From Heteronotia binoei (taxonomy: Eukaryota), in the NCBI RefSeq assembly GCF_032191835.1, contig NC_083233.1, positions 84,568,001-84,632,000 of the forward strand: a DNA stretch of 64,000 nucleotides, given 5' to 3'. Below the pieces are notes generated by a model. It had not been told where the DNA came from and searched no databases. It saw nothing but the letters and a program-made list of their open reading frames with translations. Positions 5,138-64,000 of the stretch are shown piece by piece. A program made the translations under genes and the position numbers. Numbering within the stretch: position 1 is the first letter of the stretch; each line of letters starts with the position of its first letter.

Positions 5138-5523
5138 ACCAGCATTGTGGGCAGCTCTTGGTTTGTCTGCTCCTGAGACAATGCAGAGAGCTGCTGGGTG
5201 AGACCACAGGTTCAGCATCCTGCTTCCTGCCAGCGGACTCCAAGCAAGACAGTCCTCCCTCCAACGACTTTAGATGCTGCAGGGCATGCTGGCTTGGAAC
5301 CTGGGGGGTCCAGGAAGACCTTGTCACTAGTGGCCTTCGGCAGGCCAAGAGGAACAGGAATCCAGAGCCGCGGAAGTGGGTTGCAGCTCATGAAGGAGTT
5401 CACTAGAATAAAAACATCTTTAAGGTGCTGCAAGAGTCTTCTCTGTTTTTGCTTCCATTTACTGCCACTTAAGCCCACGGCTGCAGCCACCCTTTGTGGC
5501 AGTCCACTTATGACATTAGACTG

Positions 5524-12253: not shown

Positions 12254-13401
12254 AGAGAGCCAGGTTGGTGTAGTGGTTAAGTGTGCAGACTCTTATCTGG
12301 GAGAACTGGGTTTGATCCCCCACTCCTCCACTTGCACCTGCTGGAACAGCCTTGGGTCAGCCAGAGCTCTCTTATCTGGGAGAACCGGGTTGGATTCCCC
12401 ACTCCTCCACTTGCAGCTGCTGGAATGGCCTTGGGTCAGCCAGAGCTCTCTTATCTGGGAGAACCGGGTTGGATTCCCCACTCCTCCACTTGCACCTGCT
12501 GGAATGGCCTTGGGTCAGCCAGAGCTCTCTTATCTGGGAGAACCGGGTTGGATTCCCCACTCCTCCACTTGCACCTGCTGGAGTGGCCTTGGGTAAGCCA
12601 GAGCTCTTATCTGGGAGAACCGGGTTGGATTCCCCACTCCTCCACTTGCACCTGCTGGAGTGGCCTTGGGTCAGCCAGAGCTCTCTTATCTGGGAGAACC
12701 GGGTTGGATTCCCCACTCCTCCACTTGCACCTGCTGGAATGGCCTTGGGTCAGCCATAGCACTCTTATCTGGGAGAACCGGGTTGGTTTCCCCACTCCTC
12801 CACTTGCACCTGCTGGAGTGGCCTTGGGTCAGCCAGAGCTCTCTTATCTGGGAGAACCGGGTTGGATTCCCCACCCCTCCACTTGCACCTGCTGGAATGG
12901 CCTTGGGTCAGCCATAGCACTCTTATCTGGGAGAACCGGGTTGGATTCCCCACTCCTCCACTTGCACCTGCTGGAGTGGCCTTGGGTCAGCCAGAGCTCT
13001 CTTATCTGGGAGAACCGGGTTGGATTCCCCACTCCTCCACTTGCACCTGCTGGAATGGCCTTGGGTCAGCCATAGCACTCTTATCTGGGAGAACCGGGTT
13101 GGTTTCCCCACTCCTCCACTTGCACCTGCTGGAATGGCCTTGGGTCAGCCAGAGCTCTCTTATCTGGGAGAACCGGGTTGGATTCCCCACTCCTCCACTT
13201 GCAGCTGCTGGAATGGCCTTGGGTCAGCCAGAGCTCTCACAGAGTTGTCCTTGAATGGGCAGCTTCTGGGAGAGCTCTCTCAGCCCCACTCACCTCACAG
13301 GGTGTCTGTTGTGGGGGAAGAAGGGAAAGGAGATTGTGAGCCGCTCTGAGACTCTTCGGAGTGGAGGGCGGGATATAAATCTGCAATTCTCCTTCTTCTT
13401 C
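12254..13401 (+). mobile_element. Squam3-like SINE carrying 12 tandem copies of an internal 79-bp unit
   Basis: Normal head (GAGAGCCAG...TAGTGGTTAAG); TTATCTGGGA recurs every 79 bp from 12293 to 13160; normal tail from about 13238. Confidence 0.9.
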
Positions 13402-13402
13402 T

Positions 13403-14380
13403 AGAGAGCCAGTTTGGTGTAGTGGTTAAGTGTGCAGACTCTTATCTGGGAGAACCGGGTTTGATCCCCCACTTGCAGCTGCTGGAGTGGTCTTGGGTCA
13501 GCCAGAGCTCTCTTATCTGGGAGAACCGGGTTGGATTCCCCACTCCTCCACTTGCAGCTGCTGGAATGGCCTTGGGTCAGCCAGAGCTCTCTTATCAGGG
13601 AGAACCGGGTTTGATTCCCCACCCCTCACTTGCAGCTGCTGGAATGGCCTTGGGTCAGCCATAGCACTCTTATCTGGGAGAACCGGAATTCATTCCCCCC
13701 TCCTCCACTTGCACCTGCTGGAATGGCCTTGGGTCAGCCAGAGCTCTTATCTGGGAGAACTGGGTTGGATTCCCCACTCCTCCACTTGCACCTGCTGTCA
13801 TGGCCTTGGGTCAGCCATGGCTCTCTTATCTGGGAGAACCAGGTTTGATTCCCCACTCCTCCACTCGCACCTGCTGGAATGGCCTTGGGTCAGCCATAGT
13901 GGTAAAGTTTGCGGACTCTTATCTGGGAGAACCGGGTTTGATTCCCCACTCCTCCACTTGCAAATGCTGGAATGGCCTTGGCTCAGCCAGAGCTCTCTTA
14001 TCTGGGAGAACTGGGTTTGGTTCCCCACTCCTCCACTTGCAGCTGCTGGAATGGCCTTGGGTCAGCCAGAGTTCTCTTATCTGGGGGACCGGGTTTGATT
14101 CCCCTCTCCTCCACTCACCGCTGCTGGAATGGCCTTGGGTCAGCCAGAGCTCTCTTATCTGGGCGAACCGGGTTTGATTCCCCACTCCTCCACTTGCAGC
14201 TGCTGGAATGGCCTTGGCTGAGCCAGAGCTCTGGCAGAGGTTGTCCTTGAAGGGGCAGCTGCTGTGAGAGCCCTCTTAGCCCCACCCACCTCAGAGGGTG
14301 TCTGTTGTGGGGGAGGAAGATAATTATGAGTCGCTCTGAGATTCGGAGTGAAAGGCGGGATATAAATCCAATATCTTCAT
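13403..14380 (+). mobile_element. Second Squam3-like SINE with about 10 more degenerate 79-bp units and an internal head restart
   Basis: Head at 13403, repeated units, a partial head GTGGTAAAGTTTGCGGACTC at about 13899, and a tail ending ATATAAATCCAATATCTTC. Confidence 0.85.
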
Positions 14381-14397
14381 TTCCCAAACATCCAAAG

Positions 14398-14636
14398 GAA
14401 CATAATAACATAAGAGAAGCCCTGTTGGATCAGGCCAATGGCCCATCCAGTCCAACACTCTGTGTCACATAAGGACACAAGAGAAGCCATGTTGGATTAG
14501 GCCAGTGGGCCCTCTAGTCCAACACTCTGTGTCACATAAGAACATAAGAGAAGCCATGTTGGATCAGGCCAATGGCCACTCCAGTCCAACACTCTGTGTC
14601 ACACAGTGGCCCAAAAAAAAATTATATATATCTATA
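14398..14636 (-). mobile_element. CR1 3' stub with 3 tandem 67-bp terminal units
   Basis: Same 67-bp unit, followed by CACAGTGGCCC-A9-(TA)n, the reverse complement of the CR1 3' UTR at about 31405-31440. Confidence 0.8.
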
Positions 14637-24400: not shown

Positions 24401-27400
24401 TCTGTTAAAACATTTCATTATATTATCTGATTGCATGCTGATTTGCTGTTCAACCTCTGCCTTGTGTGTACACACACACACACACACACGCAGGCAGGCA
24501 AGTCTGATTCCTTTCTGCTTGAGCAAGTGTGCCTGCAGACGAGAGCTCCCAGCCCGAATCAAACTTTGTTGGGCTGAAGCAGGCTGACCCAGTTAGAGTC
24601 CTTGAAAGGGCAGCTGCTGTAAGAGCCCTCTCAAGCCCACCCACCTCACAGGGTGTCTGTTGTGGGGGAGGAAGAGAAGGTGATCGTAAGAGAGCCAGTT
24701 TTGTGTAGTGGTTAAGTGTGTGGACTCTTATCTGGGAGAATCGGGTTTGATTCCCCACTCCTTCACTTGCAGCTGCTGGAATGGCCTTGGGTCAGCCATA
24801 GCTCTCTTCTCTGGGAGAACTGGGTTTGATTCCTCACTCCTCCACTTGCACCTGCTAGCATGGCCTTGGGTCAGCCAGAGCTCTGGCAGAGGTTGTCCTT
24901 GAAAGGGCAGCTGCTGTAAGAGCCCTCTCAGCCCCACCCACCTCACAGGGTGTCTGTTGTGGGGGAGGAAGGGAAAGGAGATTGTGAGCCGCTCTGAGAC
25001 TCTTCGGAGTGGAGGGCGGGATATAAACCCAATATCATCATCTTCTTCTTCTGCAGTGGAATCAGCTGCCAAGGGCCGTGGGGAGCCTCCCCCACACCAG
25101 CAGTCTTGAAGCAGCAGCTGGACAAAGCTGATTTTTAGCCTCCAGCTCACACATTTTTGTCTTAGCTTAGTAAAAATGGCCCCAGAGCACACTAATTTAT
25201 GCAGGAGCTCACAACTTTAATGCCAGTGGCTCACAAAGTAGAGTTTTTGCTCACAAGACTCTGCAGCTTAGAGGGGACACTGCCTGCCAGGGACACTCTA
25301 GAGGCTGACCCTGCACTGAGCGGGGGGAGGGGAGGGGGTTGGATTAGATGGCCTCTATGGCCCCTTCCAGCTCCCTGAGATGCTACAATTCCTCAGAGAA
25401 AGCACAGCAGCATGATACAGCTGATCAGCATCGTTGACAAAACCCTCCTGCTTGACATTCATTCTGAGATGCTTTCACCCGTGTTCAGGCCGATCAAAAA
25501 TCTCCCAACAATGAGTAATTCAAAGAGCCCCGTAGGGGAGCTAAGGCCCATCAGGAGAGCGGCAAGGAGAGCGACGAAGTTGTTTGTCCACAGGCCACCT
25601 TTCCTGGAAGGAGAGGAGAGCAAGAGAATCCCTTTTGTTAGAGCCAGCAGGGAAATGCTGGTGTGGCATGGCACGGTCGATACCCATTAGTTGCTTTTAG
25701 AAATATAATAACCCACAGCTGGAATGGACCCCAAGGATCATCTAGTCCCCCCCCCCGCACACTCCCCCTCCCCCAGTGACCCCTGCTCTGCCCAGAGGAA
25801 GGCAACCCTTCTGGCCAGAAGAGAAATTCCTTCTCGACCTCAGCAGTGGCGGAGGGGGGGGGGCGGCTTTCTTCTCCAGCTTTGGCTTGCCTGTGCTCAG
25901 GGCAAGAGAAACCTTCAGCTGGAGAAACTTTCTGGCTAGAATTCTAGAGCTTTTCTTCCCACTAAACCATCCCACGGAAGTTATTCTAGAGGGAGCCCTG
26001 CATTTCTCCCAGCAGTATCGACCTGGGGCCTGGGTTCAAATGCCCACACAGCCGTGAAGATCACCGGGTGCTCTTAGGCCAGGCACACAGCTCACTCGAG
26101 CCTACCCCACAAAGCTGTGCAAGTGGGCGTGGAGGGGGGGGTTTCTGTTCTGCCAAGCCCCAGGAGGAGGGTGTGTGAGGGCAGCTGAAAAACAAGCAAC
26201 AGGGCCCTGTTCTTCCCAAGAGTCAGAATGTTTCCCTTGTCATAACTAGTCTCTCTCTCTCTCTTTTTTGAGCTCCATTCTCCTCCTCCTCCAGGGCCGA
26301 ACTCACCTCCCTAGGCGCATGGCCAAGCTGCCTCCCAAGTGTGCCCCAAACAGGCCCCCAAGGGAGAAGATGGACGCCACCGTGGACCAGAGCAGGGTCA
26401 GCAGGCCAGGGCTGAGGGCTGCTTGGTAGCGCCTCTGCCAGCTCTCGTTCAAGAACTTGTGGATGTGCTGAAAGGGCAAAGAGGAGGCCTGCAGTCTCTG
26501 AGAGCCCGAAGGAGCCCCCTGGGTGAGGCTTTCACATGCATTCCCCTGCCCGGCTGCCCTGGGTTACGTTTCCAAGCCAATGGACACCTGTGCTCCCCCT
26601 CCCTTGGCCAGGCAGGTCCACACTGACCTCCAGCTGACCCAACCCCAGCCCTGCCACTTGCCCTCCCTGGCACCACGGCCCGGAGTCAGCTGGGGGCACT
26701 GTGCTTGCCAAGCGGGCCCTCAGGTTAGCTCCAGCTGCTTGCTGGTCCCAGGAAGGAGGCCCATGACCCCCCCCCCCTCCTCAGCTGCCGGAACACAAGG
26801 CTGGCTGCCTGCCCCTCTTCCCCCTCATGACCCGAATGGGCCTGGCTTCTGCTTCCACCCGCTTTGATCTTTCCACGGTTATTTGGTTCTTAACAAGCAT
26901 GAAATGTTACAGTAAACTTACATTGCATAGTTTAATCAGAAAAGTCATCAGCTGATAGCGCTGCTGGTCCCACATTAACAACAGGGAGGCCAGGCCACCA
27001 CTCCCCGTCTCTCGGCACTTTGTGCAGCCTCTGGGTTTCCTCAGGCATTGGTAGCCCTTTGGTCTTAGCCAGCAGGAAGGGCAGCCTGCTTCACTCCCCC
27101 CCCCTCCCCGAGCAGCCAGGCTCAAGCAGAGACTCCTGGGTTCTTGGACCATGCGAGTGGCAGACAAAGAATGAAGCACAGATCTGGGCCATCCACTGTG
27201 GGCGGAACAAACCAGGGAAGCAAAGCGGCCTGGATTTTACCAGCTAGCCAGTCCCTCTGAAATGGAGCTGGGAAGAACATGGAGCCCTGCTCCTAAGCAA
27301 GGCCTGAAGTCTTCTGGGAAAGAGCTGCATGCAAATCAGGGGCATCAGATCATTTCGAATGCTCCAAAGCACCGGAGAACACGAAACTGCCCCACGGCCT

Positions 27401-30418: not shown

Positions 30419-31903
30419 TGTGGATCAAAAACTGGCTGATTAATAGGAAGCAGAGAGTGAGTATAAATGGGCAGTCTTCGCAGTGGAGGACGGAAAGCAG
30501 TGGGGTGCCGCAGGGCTCAGTACTGGGTCCCATGCCCTTTAACTTGTTCATAAATGATTTAAAGTTGGGAGTGAGCAGTGAAGTGGCCAAGTTTGCGGAT
30601 GACACTAAATTGTTCAGGGTGGTGAGAACCAGAGAGGATTGTGAGGAACTCCAAAGGGATCTGTTGAGGCTGGGTGAGTGGGCGTCAACGTGGCAGATGC
30701 GGTTCAATGTGGCCAAGTGCAAAGTAATGCACATTGGGGCCAAGAATCCCAGCTACAAATACAAGTTGATGGGGTGTGAACTGGCAGAGACTGACCAAGA
30801 GAGAGATCTTGGGGTCGTGGTAGATAATTCACTGAAAATGTCAAGACAGTGTGCGTTTGCAATAAAGAAGGCCAATGCCATGCTGGGATTTATTAGGAAG
30901 GGAATTGATAACAAATCAGCCAGTATCATAATGCCCCTGTATAAATCGATGGTGCGGTCTCATTTGGAGTACTGTGTGCAGTTCTGGTCGCCGCACCGCA
31001 AAAAGGATATTATAGCATTGGAAAAAGTCCAGAGAAGTGCAACTAGAATGATTAAAGGGTTGGAATACTTTCCCTATGAAGAAAGGTTGAAACGCTTGGG
31101 GCTCTTTAGGTTGGGGAAACTTCGCCTGCAGGGTGACATGATAGAGGTTTACAAGATAATGCATTGGATGGAGAAAGTAGAGAAATAAGTACTTTTCTCC
31201 CTTTCTCACAATACAAGAACTCATGGGCATTTGATGAAATTGCTGAGCAGTCAGATTAAAACAGATAAAAGGAAGTAGTTCTTCACCCAAAGGGTGATTA
31301 ACATGTGGAATTCACTGCCACAGGAGGTGGTGGTGACTACAAGCATAGGCAGCTTCAAGAGGGGATTGGATAAAAATATGGAGCAGAGGTCCATCAGTGG
31401 CTATTATATATATATATAATTTTTTTTTGGCCACTATGTGACACAGAGTGTTGGACTGGATGGGCCATTGTCCTGATCCAACAGAGCTTCTCTTATGTTC
31501 TTATGTGACACAGAGTGCTGGACTGGATGGGCCATTGGCCTGATCCAACATGGCTTCTCTTATGTTCATATGTGACACAGTGTTGGACTGGATGGGCCAT
31601 TGGCCTGATCCAACCTGGCTTCTCTTATGTTCTTATGTGCCATAGAGTGTTGGACTGGACGGGCCATTGGCCTGATCCAACAGGGCTTCTTTTATGTTCT
31701 TATGTGACACAGAGTGTTGCACTGGAGGGGCCACTGGCCTGATCCAACACGGCTTCTCTTCTGTTCTTATGTGACACAGAGTGTTGGACTGAATGGGCCA
31801 TTGGCCTGATCCAACATGGCTTCTCTTCTGTTCTTATGTGACACAGAGTGTTGGACTGGATGGGCCATTGGCCTGATCCAACATGGCTTCTCTTATGTTC
31901 TTA
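30419..31903 (+). mobile_element. 5'-truncated CR1 (RT C-terminal part) with 7 tandem 67-bp terminal units
   Basis: GVPQGSVLGP and FADDTKL motifs; premature TAA at 31186-31188; tail array 31440-31903. Confidence 0.92.
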
Positions 31904-32414
31904 TAACTTAGCATGATGTAACGTGGTACAATATGGGGCATATTCATGGGATTTACTGTTGGGCATGTTTCTGGAGTTTGGCATTTTTAAACTGTAACTT
32001 TTTATATATTTTTATTTGGTTTTTTTTGTAATAGTTTTATTTCTCTCGTCATCATAAGGCTCCTTGAGTTCTACAAGAGAGAACGGCATCTAACAGATGC
32101 TTACAAACATCTTCATTTTCTATTAGAAAACCACCAGTAGATGCGGCCCCCGGTGCCCCCCCCCGACAGAGGACCCCCTCAAAAAACATGTAGATCCGGT
32201 CTTCCTTGCAAGCTCAAGCCATTGCTATTCCAACACAAAGGAAACACGGTGGAGGACCCAAGAAGCCCAAGTAGATGAACAGAGAACTCCATGATGAGTT
32301 ATGGAAGAGAAAGGAAATGTTCAAGAAATGGAGGGAAGCAGAAGCCTCTAAAGTATTTGATGTTGCTAGGGGTCAGTCTGTGGGCACCTAAAGGGCCACT
32401 CGGGGATCCAGGGG

Positions 32415-33469: not shown

Positions 33470-33511
33470 ATGGCAGCAATTAAGTTGCTGTAAGGAAAAA
33501 GACACATTGAG

Positions 33512-34474
33512 ACATAAGAACATAAGAGAAGCCATGTTGGATCAGGCCAACGGCCCATCAAGTCCAACACTCTGTGTCACAGAAGAACAGAAGAGAAGCC
33601 ATGTTGGATCAGGCTAGTGGCCCATCCAGTCCAACAATCTGTGTCACATAAGAACATAAGAGAAGCCATGTTGGATCAGGCCAATGGCCCATCCAGTCCA
33701 ACTCTCTGTGTCACATAAGAACATCAGAGAAGCCATGTTGGATCAGGCCAACGGCCCATCAAGTCCAACACTCTGTGTCACACAGTGGCAAAAAAATTTA
33801 TATACACACATACACTGTGGCTAATAGCCACTGATGGACCTGTGCTCCATATTTTTATCTAAATCCCTCTTGAAGGTGGCTATACTTGTGGCCGCCGCCA
33901 CCTCCTGTGGCAGTGAATTCCACATGTCAATCACCCTTTGGGTGAAGAAGTACTGCCTTTTATCCGTTTTAACCTGTCTGCTCAGCAATTTCATCGAATG
34001 CCCACGAGTTCTTGTATTGTGAGAAAGGGAGAAAAGTACTTCTTTCTCTACTTTCTCCATCCCATGCATTGTCTTGTAAACCTCTATCATGTCACCCCTC
34101 AGTCAACGTTTCTCCAAGCTAAAGAGTCCCAAGCGTTTCAACCTTTCTTCATAGGGAAAGTGTTCCAGCCCTTTAATCATTCTAGTTGCCCTTCTCTGGA
34201 CTTTCTCCAATGCTATAATATCCTTTTTGAGGTGCGGCGACCAGAACTGCACACAGTACTCCAAATGAGACCGCACCATCGATTTATGCAGGGGCATTAT
34301 GATACTGGCTGATTTGTTTTCAATTCCCTTCCTAATAATTCCCAGCATGGCGTTGGCCTTTTTTATTGCAAACGCACACTGTCTTGACATTTTCAGTGAG
34401 TTATCTACCACGACCCCAAGATCTCTCTCTTGGTCCGTCTCTGCCAGTTCACACCCCCTCAACTTGTATTTGTA
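33512..34474 (-). mobile_element. 5'-truncated CR1 with 4 tandem terminal units, abutting the TTC28 CpG island
   Basis: Reverse strand encodes YKYKL.GCELAETDQERDLGV...SISGY, nearly identical to 51815-52467. Confidence 0.92.
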
Positions 34475-35900: not shown

Positions 35901-36547
35901 AGGGGATTTTGTTAAGCGGAGGGCAGCAGTCAAAAGAAAGTTAAAAAGGAGCCTCCCCTCCGCCCCCCAATGCCTGGAAACATTTAAGCTCCCCGAGCTG
36001 CAGCCCAAGTGGAAGAAGGCGGGCCTCGCTCCAATCAAGGCAGCGGCCACCAAGACTAAAAGGAAGCCTTCTCCAGCTGAGGAAGCCATGCAAGACAAAA
36101 TGGTTTCTCTCTGGGTCAGGTTCATCACCACAAAGCCCTCGGGGCCCACAGAACGGCATCAAGGCCTCTCTTCTGCTGCTGCTGGGCGGGAGAGGAGCGC
36201 AGCGGTTCAGTGGGCTCTTGGGGGTGTCCCTGTGAGGACACAAGCCACGGCATCCTGGACCAGCTGGAGTTTCTGGGCCAGGCTCAAGAGTAGCCCTGTG
36301 TAAAGTGCATTACAGTAGTCCATACAAGTTTCAATACAAATTTTGTATATAACGCGCTTTTAGAAAACAAGTTGTCTCCCTTGCAAGTACAAAAGGTCGT
36401 TTTCCAGCAAAACCCGCCCTCCCCCCACCTCAAAACCCGCCCTCCCCCCACCTCCAGCCTCAGCAGCTGCGCATGGCCATGATCCGTCTTCTCTTCACTT
36501 GTCCTTCCTCTGAGGGTCTCAAGGAGCCGCATGGGACTCCCCCCTCC

Positions 36548-39390
36548 TAAGAACATAAGAGAAGCCATGTGCGACCAGCCCAGTGGCCCATCCAGTCCAA
36601 CACTCTGTGTCACATAAGAACATAAGAGAAGCCATGTTGGATCAGGCCAATGGCCCATCCAGTCCAACACTCTGTGTCACATAAGAACATAAGAGAAGCC
36701 ATGTTGGATCAGGCCAATGGCCCATCCAGTCCAACACTCTGTGTCACATAAGAACAGAAGAGAACCCCTGTTGGATCAGGCCAGTGGCCCCTCCAGTCCA
36801 ACACTCTGTGTCACATAAGAACATAAGAGAAGCCATGTTGGATCAGGCCAGTGGCCCCTCCAGTCCAACACTCTGTGTCACATAAGAACATAAGAGAAGC
36901 CATGTTGGATCAGGCCAATGGCCCATCCAGTCCAACACTCTGTGTCACATAAGAACATAAGAGAAGCCATGTTGGATCAGGCCAGTGGCCCCTCCAGTCC
37001 AACACTCTGTGTCACATAAGAACATAAGAGAAGCCATGTTGGATCAGGCCAATGGCCCATCCAGTCCAACACTTTGTGTCACATAAGAACATAAGAGAAG
37101 CCATGTTGGATCAGGCCAATGGCCCATCCAGTCCAACACTCTGTGTCACATAAGAACATAAGAGAAGCCATGTTGGATCAGGCCAATGGCCCATCCAGTC
37201 CAACACTCTGTGTCACATAAGAACATAAGAGAAGCCATGTTGGATCAGGCCAATGGCCCATCCAGTCCAACACTCTGTGTCACATAAGAACATAAGAGAA
37301 GCCATGTTGGATCAGGCCAATGGCCCATCCAGTCCAACACTTTGTGTCACATAAGAACAGAAGAGAAGCCCTGTTGGATCAGGCCAGTGGCCCCTCCAGT
37401 CCAACACTCTGTGTCACATAAGAACATAAGAGAAGCCATGTTGGATCAGGCCAGTGGCCCCTCCAGTCCAACACTCTGTGTCACATAAGAACATAAGAGA
37501 AGCCATGTTGGATCAGGCCAATGGCCCATCCAGTCCAACACTTTGTGTCACATAAGAACATAAGAGAAGCCATGTTGGATCAGGCCAGTGGCCCATCCAG
37601 TCCAACACTCTGTGTCACATAAGAACATAAGAGAAGCCATGTTGGATCAGGCCAGTGGCCCCTCCAGTCCAACACTCTGTGTCACATAAGAACATAAGAG
37701 AAGCCATGTTGGATCAGGCCAATGGCCCATCCAGTCCAACACTTTGTGTCACATAAGAACATAAGAGAAGCCATGTTGGATCAGGCCAGTGGCCCATCCA
37801 GTCCAACACTCTGTGTCACATAAGAACATAAGAGAAGCCATGTTGGATCAGGCCTATGGTCCCTCCAGTCCAACACTCTGTGTCACATAAGAACAGAAGA
37901 GAAACCATGTTGGATCAGGCCAGTGGCCCCTCCAGTCCAACACTCTGTGTCACATAAGAACATAAGAGAAGCCATGCTGGATCAGGCCAGTGGCCCCTCC
38001 AGTCCAACACTCTGTGTCACATAAGAACAGAAGAGAAGCCATGTTGGATCACGCCAGTGGCCCCTCCAACACTCTGTGTCACATAAGAACATAAGAGAAG
38101 CCATGTTGGATCAGGCCAATGGCCCATCCAGTCCAACACTTTGTGTCACATAAGAACATAAGTGAAGCCATGTTGGATCAGGCCAGTGGCCCATCCAGTC
38201 CAACACTCTGTGTCACATAAGAACATAAGAGAAGCCCTGTTGGATCAGGCCAGTGGCCCCTCCAGTCCAACACTCTGTGTCACATAAGAACATAAGAGAA
38301 GCCATGTTGGATCAGGCCAATGGCCCATCCAGTCCAACACTTTGTGTCACATAAGAACATAAGAGAAGCCATGTTGGATCAGGCCAGTGGCCCATCCAGT
38401 CCAACACTCTGTGTCACATAAGAACATAAGAGAAGCCATGTTGGATCAGGCCTATGGTCCCTCCAGTCCAACACTCTGTGTCACATAAGAACAGAAGAGA
38501 AGCCATGTTGGATCAGGCCAATGGCCCATCCAGTCCAACACTCTGTGTCACATAAGAACATAAGAGAAGCCATGTGGGATCAGGCCAGTGGCCCATCCAG
38601 TCCAACACTTTGTGTCACACAGTGGCCAAAAATCCAAGTGCCATCAGGAGGTCCATCAGTGGGGCCAGGACACTAGAGGCCCTCCCACTGTTGCTCCCAC
38701 CTCCCCAGACACCAAGAATACAGAGCATCACCACCCCAGACATAGAATTCCAGCAATACGCTGTGGCTAATAGCTACAGATGGACCTCTGCTCCACATGT
38801 TTCTCCAATCTCGTCTTGAAGCTGGCTATGCTTGCAGCTGCCACCACCTCTTGTGTCAGTGAATTCCATGTGTTAATCACCCTTTGGGTAAAGAAGTACT
38901 TCCTTTTATACATTCTAACCCAACTGCTCAGCAATTAAATTGAATTTCCTTGAGTTCTTGTATTGTGAGAAAGGGAGAAAAGTACTTCTTTCTCTACCTT
39001 CTCTATCCCATGCATAATCTTGTAAACCTCTATCATGTCACCCCTCAGTCGACATTTCTCCCAGCTAAAGAGCCCCCAAGCGTTTTAACCTTTCTTCATA
39101 GGGAAAGTGTTCCAACCCTTTAGTCATTCTAGTTGCCCTTTTCTGCACTTCTCCCAATGCTATAATATATTTTTTGAGGTGGGGTGACCAGAATTGTACA
39201 CAGTATTCCAAATGAGACCACACCATCAGTTTATACAAGGGCATTATGATGCTGGCTGATTTGTTTTCAGTTCCCTTCCTAATAATTCCCAGCATGGTGT
39301 TGGCCTTTTTTTATTGCCATCGCACACTGTCTTGACATTTTCAGTGAGTTATCTATCGTAACTCCAAGATCTGTCTCTTGGTCAGTCTCT
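36548..39390 (-). mobile_element. 5'-truncated CR1 with about 31 tandem 67-bp terminal units (TTC28 intron 1)
   Basis: Array 36548-38616, then 3' UTR and RT C-terminus to 39390; CCCTCC flanks both ends (36542-36547 and 39391-39396), a candidate target-site duplication. Confidence 0.92.
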
Positions 39391-39685
39391 CCCTCCATCG
39401 TCCCCCCAACCATGTGAGGTGGGCAAGGCTGAGCAACCAGCCCCGGGTGACCTGGATATCAAGGCCCTGGCTCAGGAAGGGGGGAGTCTGCTTCTGGCTT
39501 TCCTACATCCCCTCCTGCATTCCCCACAGAAGCAGTGGGGTGGAGGGGAAGTCCTGACAGAGAGGCTGTTCCCTAAACCTTCAGGGGCACCTTTTGTCCT
39601 CCTGTGACCCCTTTTTCCTGTGGGCTGAGAACAGGAGAGGGGTAGAAGGGAGGTTGCTGTCCCACTCACTCTGCCCTTTGGCTCG

Positions 39686-40320
39686 GGCTGTTCACACCTG
39701 AAGAAGAAGACTGCAGTTTTACACCCCTTCTCAGGCTGTTCACACCTGAAGAAGAAGACTGCAGTTTTACACCCCTTCTCGGGCTGTTCACCCCTGAAGA
39801 AGAAGACTGCAGTTTTACACCCCTTCTCGGGCTGTTCACACCTGAAGAAGAAGACTGCAGTTTTACACCCCTTCTCTCTGAATCCGAAGCTCAGCGGCTT
39901 ACAATCTCCTTTATCTTCTTCCCTGTGAGGTGGATGGGGCTGAGAGAGCTTTCACAGCAGCTGCCCTTTCAAGGACAGAGTCTCAGAGCGGCCTACAATC
40001 TCCTTTCCCTTCCTCCCCCACAACAGACACTCTGTGAGGTGGGTGGGGCTGAGAAGGTTCTCCCAGAAGCTGCTTTTCAAGGACAGAGACTCAGAGCGGC
40101 TTACAATCTCCTATATCTTCTCCCCTCACAACAGACACCCTGTGAGGTGGGTGGGGCTGAGAGGGCTCTCACAACAGCTGCCCTTTCAAGGACAACTCCC
40201 ATGAAAGCTATGACTGACCCAAGGCCCTTCCAGCAGCTGCAAGTGGAGGAGTGGGGACTCAAACCCAGTTCTCCCAGATAAGCGTCCGCGCACTTCACCA
40301 CTGCACCAAACTGGCTCTCT
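39686..40320 (-). mobile_element. Squam3-like SINE with triplicated body segment and 4 tandem copies of the tail plus flank (about 47 bp)
   Basis: Head reverse complement ends at about 40320; an approximately 110-bp segment is repeated three times; GCTGTTCACACCTGAAGAAGAAGACTGCAGTTTTACACCCCTTCTC is repeated four times. Confidence 0.8.
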
Positions 40321-44991: not shown

Positions 44992-46760
44992 GGAACTCTT
45001 GGGGAGCCCTTGGTGGTGAGGAACTCTTGGGGAGCCCTTGGTGGTGAGGAACTCTTGGGGAGCCCTTGGTGGTGAGGAACTCTTGGGGGGCCCTTGGTGG
45101 TGAGGAACTCTTGGGGGGCCCTTGGTGGTGAGGAACTCTTGGGGAGCCCTTAGTGGTGAGGAACTCTTGGGGAGCCCTTGGTGGTGAGGAACTCTTGGGG
45201 AGCCCTTGGTGGTGAGGAACTCTTGGGGAGCCCTTGGTGGTGAGGAACTCTTGGGGAGCCCTTGGTGGTGAGGAACTCTTGGGGAGCCCTTGGTTGTGAG
45301 GAACTCTTGGGGAGCCCTTGGTGGTGAGGAACTCTTGGGGAGCCCTTGGTGGTGAGGAACTCTTGGGGAGCCCTTGGTGGTGAGGAACTCTTGGGGAGCC
45401 CTTGGTGGTGAGGAACTCTTGGGGAGCCCTTGGTGGTGAGGAACTCTTGGGGAGCCCTTGGTGGTGAGGAACTCTTGGGGAGCCCTTGGTGGTGAGGAAC
45501 TCTTGGGGAGCCCTTGGTGGTGAGGAACTCTTGGGGGGCCCTTGGTGGTGAGGAACTCTTGGGGAGCCCTTGGTGGTGAGGAACTCTTGGGGAGCCCTTG
45601 GTGGTGAGGAACTCTTGGGGAGCCCTTGGTGGTGAGGAACTCTTGGGGGGCCCTTGGTGGTGAGGAACTCTTGGGGGGCCCTTGGTGGTGAGGAAGTCTT
45701 GGGGAGCCCTTGGTGGTGAGGAAGTCTTGGGGAGCCCTTGGTGGTGAGGAACTCTTGGGGAGCCCTTGGTGGTGAGGAAGTCTTGGGGGGGCCCTTGGTG
45801 GTAAGGAACTCTTGGGGAGCCCTTGGTGGTGGGGAACTCTTGGGGAGCCCTTGGTGCTGAGGAAGTCTTGGGGGGGGCCTTGGTGGTGAGGAACTCTTGG
45901 GGGGCCCTTGCTGGTGAGGAAGTCTTGGGGAGCCCTTGGTGGTGAGGAACTCTTGGGGGGCCCTTGCTGGTGAGGAAGTCTTGGGGAGCCCTTGGTGGTG
46001 AGGAACTCTTGGGGAGCCCTTGGTGGTGAGGAACTCTTGGGGAGCCCTTGGTGGTGGGGAACTCTTGGGGAGCCCTTGGTGCTGAGGAAGTCTGGGGGGG
46101 GCCTTGGTGGTGAGGAACTCTTGGGGGGCCCTTGCTGGTGAGGAAGTCTTGGGGAGCCCTTGGTGGTGAGGAACTCTTGGGGGGCCCTTGCTGGTGAGGA
46201 AGTCTTGGGGAGCCCTTGGTGGTGAGGAACTCTTGGGGAGCCCTTGGTGGTGAGGAACTCTTGGGGAGCCCTTGGTGGTGGGGAACTCTTGGGGAGCCCT
46301 TGGTGCTGAGGAAGTCTTGGGGGGGGCCTTGGTGGTGAGGAACTCTTGGGGGGCCCTTGCTGGTGAGGAAGTCTTGGGGAGCCCTTGGTGGTGAGGAACT
46401 CTTGGGGGGCCCTTGCTGGTGAGGAAGTCTTGGGGAGCCCTTGGTGGTGAGGAACTCTTGGGGAGCCCTTGGTGGTGAGGAACTCTTGGGGAGCCCTTGG
46501 TGGTGAGGAACTCTTGGGGGGGCCCTTGTTGGTGAGGAACTCTTGGGGAACCCTTGGTGGTGAGAAACTCTTGGGGGGCCCTTGTTGGTGAGCAACTCTT
46601 GGGGAGCCCTTGGTGCTGAGGAAGTCTTGGGGGGGGGCCCTTGGTGGTGAGGAACACTTGGGGAGCCCTTGGTGGTGAGGAACTCTTGTGGAGCCCTTGC
46701 TGGTGAGGAACTCTTGGGGGGGCCCTTGCTGGTGAGGAATTCTTGGGGGGCCCTTGATGG
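44992..46760. repeat. 28-bp G-rich minisatellite, about 63 copies
   Basis: Unit GAACTCTTGGGGAGCCCTTGGTGGTGAG with patterned variants. Confidence 0.95.
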
Positions 46761-47439
46761 TTTGGCAGCTTGGAGGGACGCCTGGTGATTCTCGTGGCTG
46801 ACTGTGCTGCCCTCTGGTGTCTCTTGCTGAGCCTGCAGGGTGGCCAGAGCAAGCAGCCGGCCTTGGAGTTTCTCTTGAATGGGGGCGAAGAGGGAGAGAC
46901 TTACTGGGTGTTCCTTCCTGTGCCAAAGGAGGAGGAGGGCCTTGGTTTTCAGGCTGTGCCTTTATCTGTGAGAAGAAGGCAGGCTGCTCTTCAGAACGTC
47001 GAGGCTTTGCACCGAGAGGCCAGCTTGTGCGTCCTGCCCTTTCGTGGGGCTGGGGAGGAGGGAGGGAGGGAGGGACAGCCCTTGTGTGCCTGGACCATGA
47101 AGAGGAAGCCCCTGCAGTCATGGAGTTCTTCAAAGGTCCTTGAAGATGACGAAGCAGAGTGGTAGCCTGCTGGCGTGAGGCAGGGCCTGAAATGGAGACA
47201 AGCCTTTGGGGTTTTGAGTGTGAAAGATGGCAGCACCTCCCTGGACAGCACACGGCCCTGGAGATTGTCCTGGATTTGAATATTCAACAAGAAATGCCAA
47301 ATGGCCCATGGTTGTAATCACTTCACAACTGAAAAAGGAATTTTAGCAAAAAAATTTGTGTATTTGTCATATAATATCATTCTCATGAACACGACTCACA
47401 GTATGACTAACAATAAACATCGTGACCCGAAACAAACCC

Positions 47440-48290: not shown

Positions 48291-48489
48291 CCCCTACATA
48301 GAGGGGCTGAACCTCTCACAAAGACCACTTAGACATTCAAACAGAGACCAAACATTTGAAAAAAGTCTCTTCACAAGTGTCCAAAAGTGCAAATTCCTGA
48401 AGTGTCCCACATGATCTGGCCACACCCCTCTGGCAACGGCACCATCTTTTTAAAGACGGGGGTGACATTAGCTGCCTTCCAGTCCATGA

Positions 48490-48992
48490 AACTGAGGAGG
48501 TCCTACAACTGGCAGACAATTTAAAAACTGACAAGTCACCAGGCCCAGATGGCATACATCCAAGAGTTCTGAAAGAACTCAAAGGTGAAATTGTGGACCT
48601 CCTGACAAAAATATGTAATCTTTCATTAAAATCTGCCTCTGTTCCTGAGGACTGATAAAAGGAAGTCCTTCACCCAAAGGGTGATTAACATGTGGAATTC
48701 ACTGCCACAGGAGGTGGTGGTGGCTACAAGCATAACCAGTTTCAAGAGGGGGTTAGATAAAAATATGGAGCACAGGTCCATCAGTGGCTATTAGCCACAG
48801 CCTATTGTTGGAACTCTCTATCCAGGGCTCTGTATTCTTGGTGCTTGGGGGGCAACAGTGGGAGGGCTTCTAGTGTCCTGGCCCCACTGGTGGACCTCCT
48901 GATGGCACTTGGGTTTTTTGGCCACTGTGACACAGAATGTTGGACTGGATGGGCCATTGGCCTGATCCAACATGACTTCTCTTATGTTCTTA
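48490..48992 (+). mobile_element. CR1 fragment with an internal deletion of about 1.2 kb
   Basis: KSPGPDGIHPRVLKEL...VPED is joined directly to the DKRK...SISGY region at about 48655; single terminal unit. Confidence 0.8.
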
Positions 48993-49337
48993 ATAACACG
49001 AAAGTCAATTTTAACATGAAGCTTCCCACAGTCTTTCTGTAGTCCAGCAATGCTGGCTTCCCCTGAAGGTGCAAAGAGACCAACAGGAAATCTCACAATC
49101 TAAATGCCACGTCTTAAGTTATAACTGCAACAGGCCTCTGTCTCTTCAAAGAGACAGACCCTCACGCCCCGCTCTGAACGTAGCAGCCCCGTTGCTGCCA
49201 GAGAGCGTGAGGGTCGAGAGGGAACAGGGCACCGTGCTGAGGATAAGGGGAATGCGCCCTCAGAAGGGACCTCTTCTTCGGTTGGTGAGCGGGAATCCTT
49301 TCGCGCCAAGGAACCATCCCTGAGCAGGGGGAGAGGG

Positions 49338-49844
49338 GGGGTACTGGTAGTTGGTGATTCGATCATTAGGCAAGTAGACAGCCGGGTGGCGAAACCGCGT
49401 ACTGACCGTATGGTGACTTGCCTGCCTGGTGCGAAGGTAGCGGACATTACGCGTGTAGTAGATAGACTGATAGACAGTGCTGGGGAGGAGCCTGTGGTCG
49501 TGGTGCATGTTGGCACCAACGATGTGGGGAAATGCAGTCGTGAGGTCCTGGAGGAAAAATTTAGGCTGCTAGGCAGGAGACTTAAGGCCAGGACCTCCAA
49601 GGTAGCCTTCTTGGAAGTGCTACCTGTTCCACGTGCAGGGCAGGAGAGACAGGCACAAATTAGAAGTCTCAATGTGTGGATGAGACGATGGTGTAAGGAG
49701 GAAGGGTTTAAGTTTCTTAGGCACTGGGATGCTTTCTGGAACAAGCGGGAGCTGTACAAAAGAGACGGTCTCCACTTGTCCCCGGATGGAACCAGGCTGC
49801 TGGCGCTTAAAATCAAAAAGGTGGCAGAGCAGTTTTTAAACTAA
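49338..49844 (+). CDS. CR1 ORF1 C-terminal SGNH/GDSL esterase-like domain
   Basis: Motifs VVGDS, VHVGTND and DGLH. Confidence 0.85.
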   Translation, partial: GVLVVGDSIIRQVDSRVAKPRTDRMVTCLPGAKVADITRVVDRLIDSAGEEPVVVVHVGTNDVGKCSREVLEEKFRLLGRRLKARTSKVAFLEVLPVPRAGQERQAQIRSLNVWMRRWCKEEGFKFLRHWDAFWNKRELYKRDGLHLSPDGTRLLALKIKKVAEQFLN

Positions 49845-49873
49845 ATCTTGGGGGAAAGCCGACAGGAGATGAA

Positions 49874-52467
49874 ATGTCTCTGGTTCGGGAGGACTCGTCT
49901 CAAAGAGATGAAGGGTTAGCTACTATTTTTCTACCGGGTAACGGACCGGAGTTGTCCACTGTGAAGGTGACAAACAATATGGACTGTCTGCCAGTGTCTC
50001 GAGGCGGCAGGAGGAAGGTGGCGGGCCTAGCTCGCCTGGGAAATTATAGATGTTTGTATGCAAATGCTAGAAGTGTTCGAAGTAAAATTGGTGAATTGGA
50101 ATGTTTAGTGTTGGGAGAAAACATAGACATTGTGGGAATTTCAGAAACTTGGTGGAATGAGGAGAATCAGTGGGACACGGTGATTCCTGGATATAAGCTA
50201 TATCGGAAGGATAGGGAGGGAAGGGTTGGAGGTGGGGTGGCTCTGTATGTCAGAGAGGATATACAGTCCAGTAAGGCTGAGATCAGAGAATTAGATTCAC
50301 TTTTAGAAATGCTTTGGGTTGAAATAGAGGGCCCAAAAGGAAATTTAACTATGGGAGTTTGTTATCGCCCACCAAATCAAAAGAGAGAGGACGATTATAA
50401 TATGATGGAAGGCTTAAAGATAGCGGCTAAACGTAAAAACTGTGTTGTAATAGGTGATTTTAACTACCCGCAGATTGATTGGGTCAATATGTGTTCTGGT
50501 CGAGAGAAAGAGATTGAGTTTCTTGATGCTCTCAATGACTGTGCTATGGAGCAGATGGTCTCAGAACCTACCAGGGGTGGGGCGATCCTGGATTTGGTCC
50601 TAAGTAATGCCCAAGACTTGGTGAGAGATGTAAAAGTGATTGCGCCGCTTGGGAGCAGTGACCATAATGTTATTGATTTCACCGTTTGTATAAATAGGGA
50701 GTTGTCCAAAAAGACCACCACAAGCACGTTTAACTTTAAAAGGGGTAAATACACTGAGATGAGGAGGCATGTGAGGAAGAAACTGAAAGGAAAGGTACAT
50801 ACGGTCAAAACCCTTGGGGAAGCTTGGACGCTATTTAAAACTATAATCCTAGAAGCTCAGATAAAATACATACCACAAGTTAGGAAAAGCACAAACAGGC
50901 ATAAGAAAAGGCCTGCGTGGTTAACAAACAAAGTAATGGAAGCTGTAAAAGGTAAGAAGGACTCCTTTAAGCGGTGGAAAACCAGTCCAAGTGAGATTAG
51001 TAAAAGGGAACACAGGCTGTGGCAAATCAAATGCAAGACTGTGATCAGGCAGGCAAAAAGGGACTATGAGGAGCATATTGCAAAAAACATAAAGACCAAC
51101 AATAAAACTTTCCTGAGGACTGGAAGGTAGCAAATGACACCCCCATCTTTAAAAAAGGTTCCAGAGGAGATCCGGGAAATTACAGGCCAGTCAGTCTGAC
51201 TTCAATACCGGGAAAGTTGGTAGAAACCATTATCAAGGACAGAATGAGTAGGCACATTAATGAACACGGGTTATTGAGGAAGACTCAGCATGGGTTCTGC
51301 AAGGGAAGATCTTGCCTCACTAACCTGTTGCATTTCTTTGAGGGGGTGAACAAACATGTGGACAAAGGAGACCCGATAGATGTTGTTTACCTTGACTTCC
51401 AGAAAGCTTTTGATAAAGTTCCTCATCAAAGGCTCCTTAGAAAGCTTGAGAATCATGGAGTAAAAGGACAGGTCCTCTTGTGGATCAAAAACTGGCTGAG
51501 TAATAGGAAGCAGAGAGTGAGTATAAATGGGCAGTCTTCGCAGTGGAGGACGGTAAGCAGTGGGGTGCCACAGGGCTCGGTACTGGGTCCCATGCTCTTT
51601 AACTTGTTCATAAATGATTTAGAGTTGGGAGTGAGCAGTGAAGTGGCCAAGTTTGCGGATGACACTAAATTGTTCAGGATGGTGAGAACCAGAGAGGATT
51701 GTGAGGAACTCCAAAGGGATCTGTTGAGGCTGGGTGAGTGGGCGTCAACGTGGCAGATGCGGTTCAATGTGGCCAAGTGCAAAGTAATGCACATTGGGGC
51801 TAAGAATCCAAGCTACAAATACAAGTTGATGGGGTGTGAACTGGCAGAGACTGATCAAGAGAGAGATCTTGGGGTCATGATAGATAACTCACTGAAAGTG
51901 TCAAGACAGTGTGCGTTTGCAATAAAAAAGGCCAATGCCATGCTGGGAATTATTAGGAAGGGAATTGAAAACAAATCAGCCAGTATCATAATGCCCCTGT
52001 ATAAATCGATGGTGCGGTCTCATTTGGAGTACTGTGTGCAGTTCTGGTCGCCGCACCTCAAAAAGGATATTATAGCTTTAGAGAAGGTGCAGAGAAGGGC
52101 AACTAGAATGATTAAAGGGCTGGAGCACTTTCCCTATGAAGAAAGGTTGAAACACTTGGGACTCTTTAGCTTGGAGAAACGTCGACTGCGGGGTGACATG
52201 ATAGAGGTTTACAAGATAATGCATGGAATGGAGAAAGTAGAGAAAGAAGTACTTTTCTCCCTTTCTCACAATACAAGAACTCGTGGGCATTCGATGAAAT
52301 TGCTGAGCAGACAGGTTAAAACGGATAAAAGGAAGTACTTCTTCACCCAAAGGGTGATTAACATGTGGAATTCACTGCCACAGGAGGTGGTGGCGGCCAC
52401 AAGTATAGCCACCTTCAAGAGGGGTTTAGATAAAAATATGGAGCACAGGTCCATCAGTGGCTATTAG
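49874..52467 (+). pseudogene. CR1 ORF2 (APE endonuclease plus RT), frameshifted by an internal deletion at about 51110
   Basis: CLYANARS, ISETWW, GDFN and SDH endonuclease motifs; DFQKAFD, PQGSVLGP and FADD RT motifs. NNK.F is fused directly to the PEDWK region in another frame. Confidence 0.9.
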
Positions 52468-53560
52468 CCACAGTGTATGTGTGTATATAACATTTTTTGC
52501 CACTGTGTGACACAGAGTGTTGGACTTGATGGGCCGTTGGCCTGATCCAGCATGGCTTCTCTTATGTTCTTATGTTCTTATGTTCAAAGGGACAATCATA
52601 CATATTCTATAAGCGGACTATTACTACAGTGTTCAAATCCAGGAACCACATTTATGGTTTCTATGCAGAACAAGGAAGACAGGTAAAAGCAAGCAAAAAC
52701 CTTTACAATGACATTAAAATCAACATTCAACAATAAGCTTACCACAGTCTTTCTATACATCCGCAGAATGCTTGGCTTGTCCTGAAGGCTCAGAGAGAGC
52801 AACGGGGATCACACTTATAGTTTCTGTGCAGAGCGTGACAAACAAACAAACCAAGAGGAAGCTCTCCAGTGACACTGAAGTCAGTTTCAGCGTGGAGCTT
52901 CCCCCAGTCTTTCTGAGTGACCACATCTGGGTCCAGCAGTGCTGGTGTTGAGAAGGAGCAACATGAGAGCTCCCCGTCTAGATGCCACTTCACAGATTAC
53001 AGCTGCTGTGTGTCTCTGTCTCCTTAAAGGAGCACTTGTGCATATTTTATAATGTGAACATTCAAATCAAGACACAACAATTACCATTATTCGCAGGAAT
53101 ATATACATCCAAAAAAATTTACTCATGAAGCATCACAGTTCTATGCTTTAGTAAAGTGCACCAAAAATAACATTTCTGGCCTCAGGGTGTCACTGGACCC
53201 GGGCTTCTTGCTGGGTAAGGCTGGTGTAGCTTTTCCTGGGCTAACAAAAATTGCCTCTGTGGTGCACCCTCTAGGTACATGCAGATGATGTTTCTGCAGT
53301 GCAGGGTACATGTGTCTGACCTTGAAGGGTGTCGGCAGTGAATGCTGCAAGGAGGATGCTGGCTGGAGGCAGCCCATCAGAGTGGATGCTGGCTCCCAGG
53401 TTGCTTCTGGGCCCAGGTCAAGGGGCTGGTGTTGACCTTTAAAATCAGATGTGACTTGGGGAGCAGTGGCGTGGCTAGCTCAGGCCAGCTCAGGCGCATC
53501 CAGCCTGGGAAGCCAAGCAGGGGTTTGGGGATGCTACAACTGCGCACTTTATTTCTTTTA

Positions 53561-62710: not shown

Positions 62711-63025
62711 CTGGGGGTGGGGGCGGGTCCCTGTTGGTGGATGCTGAGACTGCTGAGCGGGGTTTGGGGAGGCTGACTGGGGGTGCAGTGCTTTGGTGGC
62801 TCCACTCATACTGGGGGTGGGGGCGGGTCCCTGTTGGTGGATGCTGAGACTGCTGAGCGGGGTTTGGGGAGGCTGACTGGGGGTGCAGTGCTTTGGTGGC
62901 TCCACTCATACTGGGGGGGGGGGGCGGGTCCCTGTTGGTGGATGCTGAGACTGCTGAGCGGGGTTTGGGGAGGCTGACTGGGGGTGCAGTGCTTTGGTGG
63001 CTCCACTCATACTGGGGGGGGGGGG
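62711..63025. repeat. 100-bp G-rich tandem repeat, 3 copies
   Basis: CTGGGGG...GCGGGTCCCTGTTGGTGGATGCTGAGACTGCTGAGCGG...CTCCACTCATA starts at about 62711, 62811 and 62911. Confidence 0.9.
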
Positions 63026-64000
63026 CTGCTGCTGGGGCTTGTGGCATTGGTGCTGCTCTGGGTCCCCCTGCTGTTCACTGTCTGCTGAAACTGTTGGGGG
63101 GGGGGGGGCGTGAGGGATTTGGAGTGAGGGGCCACCAGGTGTCAGTCAGTAACTTAAAGAAAATGAGCTGGGATTGCTGACAGGCTGCAGGCAAGCAGGA
63201 GGGCACCAGGAAAGCAGCAGCTGTCCATGCACTCCAGATGTCCTTTGGCCAGGCTGGTTTTGCCAGCTCCCTTTGCCAGGCTTCTTCCAGCTGACAGTGC
63301 CTAGGCAAAATGGCAGAGCCCTCTAGGCTGCCATCCCGAACTCCTTTGAGGGCAAGAGTGCTGTGGGTGGGAGGGGAGCCCTGAATCCAAAGGGATGGAT
63401 CAGTGCCGTTAAGAGGCATCGGGTGTTTCTCTCCAGCGCCGTCGGCCTCCAAAGTAGCCAAGGCTTAGGGCAGGACTGGGTGTGGCGTTTGCGTGAGATC
63501 TTGCAGGGGTGTTGGATGAGGCTGCTCATGAAGGGGCGGGTGAGGAGCTGGGAGTTGGAGCCCCTGCTTGTTTGTCCTGATCCCTGCTTGCAGGGCTTGT
63601 TGGGCCTCCTGCCTCGCTTTTCCATCAACGCGGGGGGAGGGGAGGGGGGCTTCATGAAAAGACCAGCACACCAAGAGAAGGCGGCAGAGTCCTGTTCAGG
63701 CCTGGTGGGGCAACCTGGGCCGTTCTTTCTTCTGGCCTGATACCTCTTCTGCATAAAGCTGGTTGAGCTCCAAAGCTTTTGCTGCACGGTTAGACCATCA
63801 CTGGTTGGGAATAATGATGGGTTGGATCCTGTGACCCCCATGTACAAGAACTGTGGCTCTCCCCACATTCCCTTCCCCTCAGCAGCCCTCTCTCTCTGAC
63901 ACTGGCCCAGTCCCAGGACTGGGAGACTCCTGTGGGCAAAGAGCTGCATGGCTTGGCTGGTGGGGGCAACTACAGAGGGGCTCCTGCAGGAGGCGGGGCC

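Follow-up and report, generated by a model that had tools for sequence, protein, structure and literature searches.

Tandem arrays of the CR1 tail module in Heteronotia binoei: probable minisatellites grown in resident DNA

A stretch of 64,000 nucleotides from Heteronotia binoei (assembly GCF_032191835.1, contig NC_083233.1, positions 84,568,001 to 84,632,000, analyzed here as a whole and called the window) contains copies of CR1, a long interspersed element (LINE), in which the 3'-terminal 67 bp is repeated head to tail, in the largest case 31 times. Such a locus raises the question of when the repeats were made: by the reverse transcriptase (RT) during insertion of the element, or later, in DNA already resident in the genome. 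A preliminary description favored the first answer. According to it, re-pairing may occur during target-primed reverse transcription (TPRT): once the RT has copied the terminal 67 nt, the cDNA end (..ACA) would realign on the tail UGU of that CR1 RNA or of a different one, and after up to about 30 such rounds the RT would proceed into the body, the array thus being born at insertion. The analysis reported here points to the second answer: probably, a CR1 tail grew into the 31-unit minisatellite after insertion, in resident DNA, and the array was not made in a single bout of telomerase-like re-priming. All inferences concern seven loci in this one 64-kb window.

Structure of the CR1-tail arrays

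Arrays with a period of 67 were found by Tandem Repeats Finder at five places in the window, and 59 units were matched by a search with the hairpin core. In a unit-by-unit parse, the arrays were cut at the unit start and read in the CR1 sense, giving seven loci, A to G (Table 1). Five of them are arrays of 3, 4, 7, 14, and 31 units on 5'-truncated CR1 copies, and two (F and G) have one unit; the five arrays of the preliminary description, with about 31 units at the focal locus E, were confirmed. The units correspond to the 3'-terminal CR1 hairpin and octamer tail, joined head to tail and in register. Units of other lengths are one of 59 bp, which lacks one octamer, and two of 65 bp and one of 62 bp with internal deletions. 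A remnant of the CR1 3' untranslated region (3'UTR) or of open reading frame 2 (ORF2) adjoins every array on the proximal side, where the terminal unit runs on into the parent element, and the arrays thus lie distal to the body, as described before. In array A, a tRNA-derived short interspersed element (SINE) with a (CTT)n-type tail (6306-6632) lies in reverse orientation within unit 2; six unit bases were lost at its insertion site.

The position of the internal junction, earlier reported to be identical throughout, is indeed the same in 54 of 54 cases at the five loci: the tail ...TTCTTATG is followed by TGACAC, with no extra letters. Exactly two octamers were found at 53 of the 54 internal junctions; the seven terminal tails range from about 11 to 24 nt. 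Arrays are present on two 3'UTR subfamilies, a long type (A, E, and F) and a short type (B, C, D, and G). The hexamer CCCTCC, a candidate target-site duplication, directly brackets the body and array of E taken together.

Several of these features speak for re-priming during insertion. One junction, with 2-3 nt of microhomology, is used at all loci and on both 3'UTR subfamilies, and the arrays are located at the first-synthesized end of the cDNA, within a candidate 6-bp target-site duplication. Additionally, the youngest and near-intact copy G has one unit, and its sister D (96.5% identical) has four. Precedents exist in the tail slippage of UnaL2 and the I factor (PMC3747384) and in the serial template jumping of the R2 RT (PMC11371274).

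Ages of the bodies and of the units

The age of a CR1 copy was compared with the age of the units that it carries. A private difference is defined here as a position where one aligned CR1 copy differs while all others agree. In the ORF2 remnant of E, 42 of 441 positions (9.5%) are private. Where copy F, which is of the same long type as E, agrees with the other copies, the fraction is 15 of 124 (12%), and in the long 3'UTR of E it reaches about 15%. Of ten CpGs that are kept by D and G, eight have decayed to TG or CA in E. Its ORF2 remnant has two frame changes and one stop; the corresponding part of D has one stop and that of C two stops, and the frame of G is open for 416 codons. The body of E is an old, decayed CR1 copy.

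The 29 interior units of the same array (E02-E30) contain only 4 private events in 1943 bp (0.2%), and the densities of private changes in interior and body differ with a Fisher P of about 1e-15. Units resident since the insertion would be expected to carry about 6-7 fixed changes each; 0-2 were observed. Since the body is about 10-12% diverged and broken, and the interior has 0.2% private changes, most of the 31 units of E are much younger than the insertion. Six of the interior units are identical to unit C07, and among contigs of four other organisms aligned to C07 the T/C difference at column 30 is the only common variant. By this comparison, the interior of E equals a family consensus that holds across species; being consensus-like, its units do not descend from the old resident units.

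Array A shows the same behavior, with an interior far younger than its body. Its 3'UTR remnant has about 17% private differences with indel columns included, and over its last 63 bases it differs from copy F by about 11%. The interior units are 1-4 changes away from the consensus, and the distal edge unit is 9 changes away. Overall, the interiors of E and A are at least 20-fold younger than their bodies. This age gap contradicts the proposal that RT re-priming built the array during insertion, both for E, for which it was made, and for A. As a full account of the arrays it is very improbable.

An artefact of assembly or polishing could in principle produce such a picture: the array length or the consensus-like interior could stem from collapsed or mis-polished repeats, and mis-mapped polishing would yield consensus-like interiors. 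The sequence nevertheless retains units of irregular length (62, 65, and 59 bp), variants private to one locus, and higher-order blocks in a definite order, the order of units is distinct at each of the five loci, and the window has no N letters. Such an origin is extremely unlikely.

Turnover within the arrays and their founding units

Signs of events at the DNA level were found inside the arrays. Higher-order periodicity of 3 and of 9 units is present in array E, and one six-unit block is duplicated within it (Table 1). This duplication was established by direct comparison of the blocks; the identity at a fixed lag of 603 bp is confounded by the 62-bp unit. In array A, units A05-A06 equal units A11-A12. 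The variant A8, which is private to locus E within the window, occurs in E01, at the edge, and also in six units of the interior that belong to another type, a pattern that exchange within the array would produce. The most diverged units are those at the distal edges, E31 and A14. The internal tails are constant, with two octamers, while the terminal tails vary, which argues that the junction is inherited by copying and was not remade for each unit. The duplicated blocks, the spread of a locus-private variant, and the tail length that is constant inside and variable at the ends all count further against re-priming at insertion.

The young interiors and duplicated blocks of E and A indirectly suggest that the number of units at a fixed locus has changed after insertion. 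Unit numbers increase with the age of the copy, from 1 in G through 4 in D and 7 in C to 31 in E and 14 in A, with F as an exception (Spearman rho 0.70, P = 0.12, n = 6).

The short arrays have a different history. Private divergence of the units is 10/469 (2.1%) in C vs 1.8-4.1% in its body, and 3/268 in D vs 1.0-3.5% in its body. By this measure, arrays C and D are probably about as old as their insertions. At loci A, B, and C, the mean distances between units of one locus are equal to or larger than the distances to units of other loci, and the nearest neighbor of many units is located in a different locus. The linked variants G23+C30+C57 and a 2-bp deletion are common to several loci; the recurrence of named variants between loci, noted in the preliminary description, was thus seen here as well. 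The column-30 variant is common in each of the four other organisms, and in contigs of these organisms the native body junction precedes a unit of the deletion type. Because both the column-30 variant and this junction occur in other organisms, the unit types must be old. The short arrays of 3-7 units therefore look like mixtures of old unit types from the start. The succession of a deletion-type unit and then a G46 unit is found in both A and C, and this sharing of order is not significant (P of about 0.08, hand estimate).

Re-priming on one single-unit RNA is ruled out for every array, since the units within a locus are not closest relatives and old types are mixed; the units of an array do not go back to a single template. 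This part of the earlier proposal fails even where the ages would allow it. The template of a short array may already have been a mosaic multimer, or several RNAs may have been copied in turn; the window is compatible with either.

The edge units add a further constraint. Three arrays, A, D, and E, begin and end with units that have an element-specific variant in common, and their interior units all lack it. The variant is A21 in A01 and A14. It is T20+G29 in D01 and D04, which is the type of the single unit of the sister copy G and is missing from D02 and D03. In E01 and E31 it is C42, which occurs in only these 2 of the 59 units. The joint chance of the shared edge variants in A, D, and E is about 2e-5, and the chance of at least three such hits among five arrays is about 0.01 (a hand estimate from the per-array chances). 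The shared variants imply that each founder had at least two units of its own type, between which foreign units arrived later. Three routes are compatible with this. Arrays may have exchanged units in the course of break repair; synthesis may have begun and ended on the RNA of the element itself and visited other RNAs in between; or the RT may have added templated tail units within old tails. The second of these is a point that full re-priming can claim for itself. Simple break repair with one old unit as the source was rejected, as it could not have given the two edge units an identical private variant.

Taken together, we consider it rather likely that the CR1-tail minisatellites arose in two phases, with short mosaic tails present at insertion and long arrays grown later in resident DNA. 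In the first phase, multi-unit tails of 2-7 units, mosaics of old types, would be present when a copy inserts, derived from a copied multi-unit template or from template switching between CR1 RNAs. In the second phase, for which E and A provide the evidence, long arrays would arise much later by out-of-register recombination, break repair, or replication slippage, together with exchange of units between arrays. Interior units would thereby be renewed and multiplied in blocks, with edge units left to decay, and the fixed junction would be inherited by copying and not re-created at each unit. Alternatives already mentioned in the preliminary description, namely pre-existing mixed arrays, post-insertion unequal exchange, and gene conversion, are favored by the evidence.

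Several points weigh against this history. Simple in-situ expansion does not predict the shared edge variants. The sole near-intact CR1 in the window, G, has one unit, and a multi-unit master was not seen here. If RNA of active elements had templated the units, consensus-like interiors in old copies would be expected as well. Finally, array lengths and orders are known from assembled sequence alone, and the whole inference base is seven loci in one window.

A more limited role of the RT is possible, though on balance unlikely. Jumping or re-priming would then make only the founding short array, of two or a few units with own-type ends and sometimes foreign units between, and DNA processes would do the rest. 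The age of C and D, equal to that of their bodies, and their heterogeneity at birth agree with this, as do D01 and D04, which match the single unit of G, on either side of the foreign types D02 and D03; single-unit elements like G exist as possible templates. However, a mosaic multi-unit master or early exchange between arrays explains the data equally well, the variability of junctions expected from tails of variable length was not seen, and seven loci cannot separate these alternatives. An RT contribution to the founding duplication is thus possible and would fit known chemistry, but it is not required, and the same applies to template jumping between RNAs as the origin of the short arrays.

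In another version, the RT acts on resident copies. DNA 3' ends at nicks or breaks in resident CR1 tails would be extended in register, in a telomerase-like manner, on the RNA tails of active CR1, and the resulting tail-only cDNA would be resolved by homology. In this way, young consensus-like units would enter old dead copies and come to lie between duplicates of the old edge units. The consensus-like interiors of the old copies E and A and the old private variants shared by their edge units are in line with this, and it would account for the constant position of the junction as well as for the variants common to the two edges of an array. Rare contigs of another organism, in which CR1 tail ends are joined to 5'-truncated CR1 3'UTR with filler, can also be cited for it. 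Against it, several coincidences of register are needed, and the variant A8, present in E01 as well as in six units of the interior, shows that exchange at the DNA level has occurred within the locus. We regard it as quite doubtful; if true, CR1 tails would be self-renewing landing pads.

Table 1. Coordinates of the CR1-tail arrays, their parts, and related features in the window
Feature	Position	Strand	Description
Array A	5506-6699	-	14 units; about 140 bp of old 3'UTR of the long type; SINE inside unit 2; distal edge unit strongly decayed
Array B	14393-14601	-	3 units on about 30 bp of CR1 3'UTR
Array C	31439-31905	+	7 heterogeneous units on CR1 body of at least 1 kb
Array D	33505-33780	-	4 units
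Array E (focal)	36548-38617	-	31 units: CR1 tail, hairpin and two octamers
E31, distal edge unit	36548-36612	-	3 private changes and C42; hairpin stem broken by private changes
Block E12-E17	37484-37885	-	Duplicate of E03-E08, 2 differences in 402 bp
Block E03-E08	38082-38483	-	Six-unit higher-order block
E01, proximal edge unit	38551-38617	-	Shares C42 only with E31; carries locus-private A8
E body	38618-39390	-	5'-truncated CR1: remnant of ORF2 C-terminus and long-type 3'UTR; 10-12% private divergence
CCCTCC, distal copy	36542-36547	.	Candidate target-site duplication of E, directly outside the tail end
CCCTCC, proximal copy	39391-39396	.	Candidate target-site duplication of E, directly outside the 5' end of the CR1 body
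Copy F tail	48928-48995	+	1 unit
Copy G	49386-52585	+	Near full-length; youngest of the CR1 copies in the window; reading frames for esterase, endonuclease, and RT; single tail unit
Copy G tail	52508-52585	+	1 unit (52508-52574) and 3.2 octamers
Period-67 repeat (Tandem Repeats Finder)	5580-6346		11.5 copies
Period-67 repeat (Tandem Repeats Finder)	14400-14603		3.0 copies
Period-67 repeat (Tandem Repeats Finder)	31435-31904		7.0 copies
Period-67 repeat (Tandem Repeats Finder)	33512-33782		4.0 copies
Period-67 repeat (Tandem Repeats Finder)	36548-38619		31.0 copies, 95% matches; largest
SINE-internal 79-bp array	12291-13236	+	12 units
SINE-internal 79-bp array	13440-14231	+	10 units
SINE-internal 79-bp array	24726-24884		2 units

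Parent element and comparable repeats

The 67-bp module, consisting of the hairpin and the octamer tail, is thought to be recognized by the CR1 reverse transcriptase. In the window, two marks of a CR1-clade 3' end were found, namely a joined CR1 ORF2, which encodes an endonuclease and an RT, and an 8-nt microsatellite tail. The octamer TCTTATGT is present in 3.2 copies in the terminal tail of copy G (52560-52585) and in two copies per array unit. Directly upstream of the tail lies an inverted repeat, GTTGGA...TCCAAC, with an inner GGCC-loop-GGCC; its pairing is predicted, and the folding energy of a single unit does not exceed that of shuffles (z = -0.03). No Rfam family was found for the 67-bp unit, and two metagenome scans, one with the junction and one with the hairpin core, gave zero matches.

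Domain matches in copy G include Exo_endo_phos (2e-16), RVT_1 (2.5e-30), and GDSL lipase (4e-13), the last one in an esterase-type ORF1 piece; some CR1-like elements have an ORF1 of this type. The nearest proteins to its RT reading frame are CR1-type RTs of turtles and birds with 50-74% identity; the protein search with this frame returned only turtle and bird CR1 proteins and no close gecko copies. In copy F (48300-48995), the N-terminal RT region is fused directly to the end of ORF2 by an internal deletion, and the junction between body and unit lacks 2 bp.

Rare high-depth contigs of a related organism show the CR1 tail end followed by 1-9 filler letters and then by the CR1 3'UTR about 60-70 bp upstream of the unit. 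The positions in the window that correspond to these contigs are 31367-31381, joined to 31633-31638 and 31902-31905. Other junctions between a tail and an internal position thus exist in the related organism.

Three more tandem arrays in the window are built from a 79-bp segment of a SINE. They have one common junction, AGCTC|TCTTATC, contain dimeric higher-order repeats, and combine a native-like edge unit with an array-specific interior. By these features, they can be assigned to the published class of SINE-derived satellites (sSat), described in squamates and especially in geckos (Vassetzky et al., 2023; PMC10702118). The 79-bp unit falls in the 5' part of the SINE, where tail re-priming cannot act. 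The same signature is therefore found where there is no 3' tail for priming, which argues both against re-priming during insertion and against RT-templated renewal of resident tails. For reasons of parsimony, the CR1-tail arrays may be assigned to the same process as the 79-bp arrays. Tandem repeats with a period of at least 10 make up about 13% of the window, and the region is therefore prone to such growth.

In the published sSat, the middle units are uniform at long loci, short loci contain heterogeneous units, and orthologous loci differ in unit number (PMC10702118). The CR1 arrays resemble them in that a retroposon segment is repeated head to tail, the terminal unit continues into the parent, and the same boundary is used at many dispersed loci. 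Here too, long loci are uniform in the middle with diverged edges and short loci are heterogeneous. In contrast to the published class, the parent is a LINE, CR1, and not a SINE, and the unit is exactly the 3'-terminal recognition module. The CR1 arrays are thus a counterpart of sSat and not a member; CR1 is not mentioned in PMC10702118.

The 3' end of CR1 has been described as a hairpin followed by an 8-nt microsatellite similar to ATTCTRTG (Suh, 2015, as cited in PMC8665684), and the CR1 tails of snakes seed microsatellites (PMC3157835). The present units share with these the inverted repeat followed by an ATTCTRTG-like octamer repeat, and the use of the tail as a seed of tandem repeats that is spread by retrotransposition. 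However, the whole 67-bp module is repeated here, and not a tail motif of 3-8 nt.

Chemistry of the kind invoked in the preliminary description is known from other elements. Slippage by the RT produces the UAA repeats of the I factor and the TGTAA repeats of UnaL2 (PMC3747384), and the R2 RT jumps to further 3'UTR RNAs, giving head-to-tail products (PMC11371274); in each case, pairing over 2-3 nt brings the 3' end of the cDNA back to a template 3' end, and the template is copied again. In these systems the repeats are made during insertion, whereas the units of the long CR1 arrays would be mostly post-insertion and not derived from a single template. Tandems of transposable elements are also known to seed satellites when a double insertion later undergoes unequal exchange (McGurk and Barbash, 2018; PMC5932611). 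Tandems of this kind, in which a non-LTR (non-long terminal repeat) element is joined tail to internal position, are similarly able to expand by unequal exchange. Double insertions, however, leave varied 5' truncation points and copies of the target site. As the origin of each junction they were rejected: the 54 junctions are identical, with no extra letters and no target-site copy inside the arrays. In the literature searched, no paper on arrays built from the CR1 recognition tail was found.

Retroposon-derived satellites are documented for squamate SINEs, and CR1-tail arrays, if confirmed genome-wide, would extend this class to LINEs. They would also be a convenient system for the study of minisatellite birth, with the parent element dating the locus and thus timing growth, import of units, and the edge effect. 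For annotation, these arrays inflate CR1 counts and obscure real 3' ends. More speculatively, multimerized RT-recognition hairpins in RNA might serve as decoys or extra entry sites for the CR1 machinery.

Other minisatellites were found in the window. One (44992-46761) has 63 copies of a 28-bp unit with 92% matches, and a transposon parent is not evident for it. Further ones are 48 bp x4 at 39682-39876, 108 bp x2.5 in a SINE 3' part at 39921-40194, and 100 bp x3 at 62711-63026.

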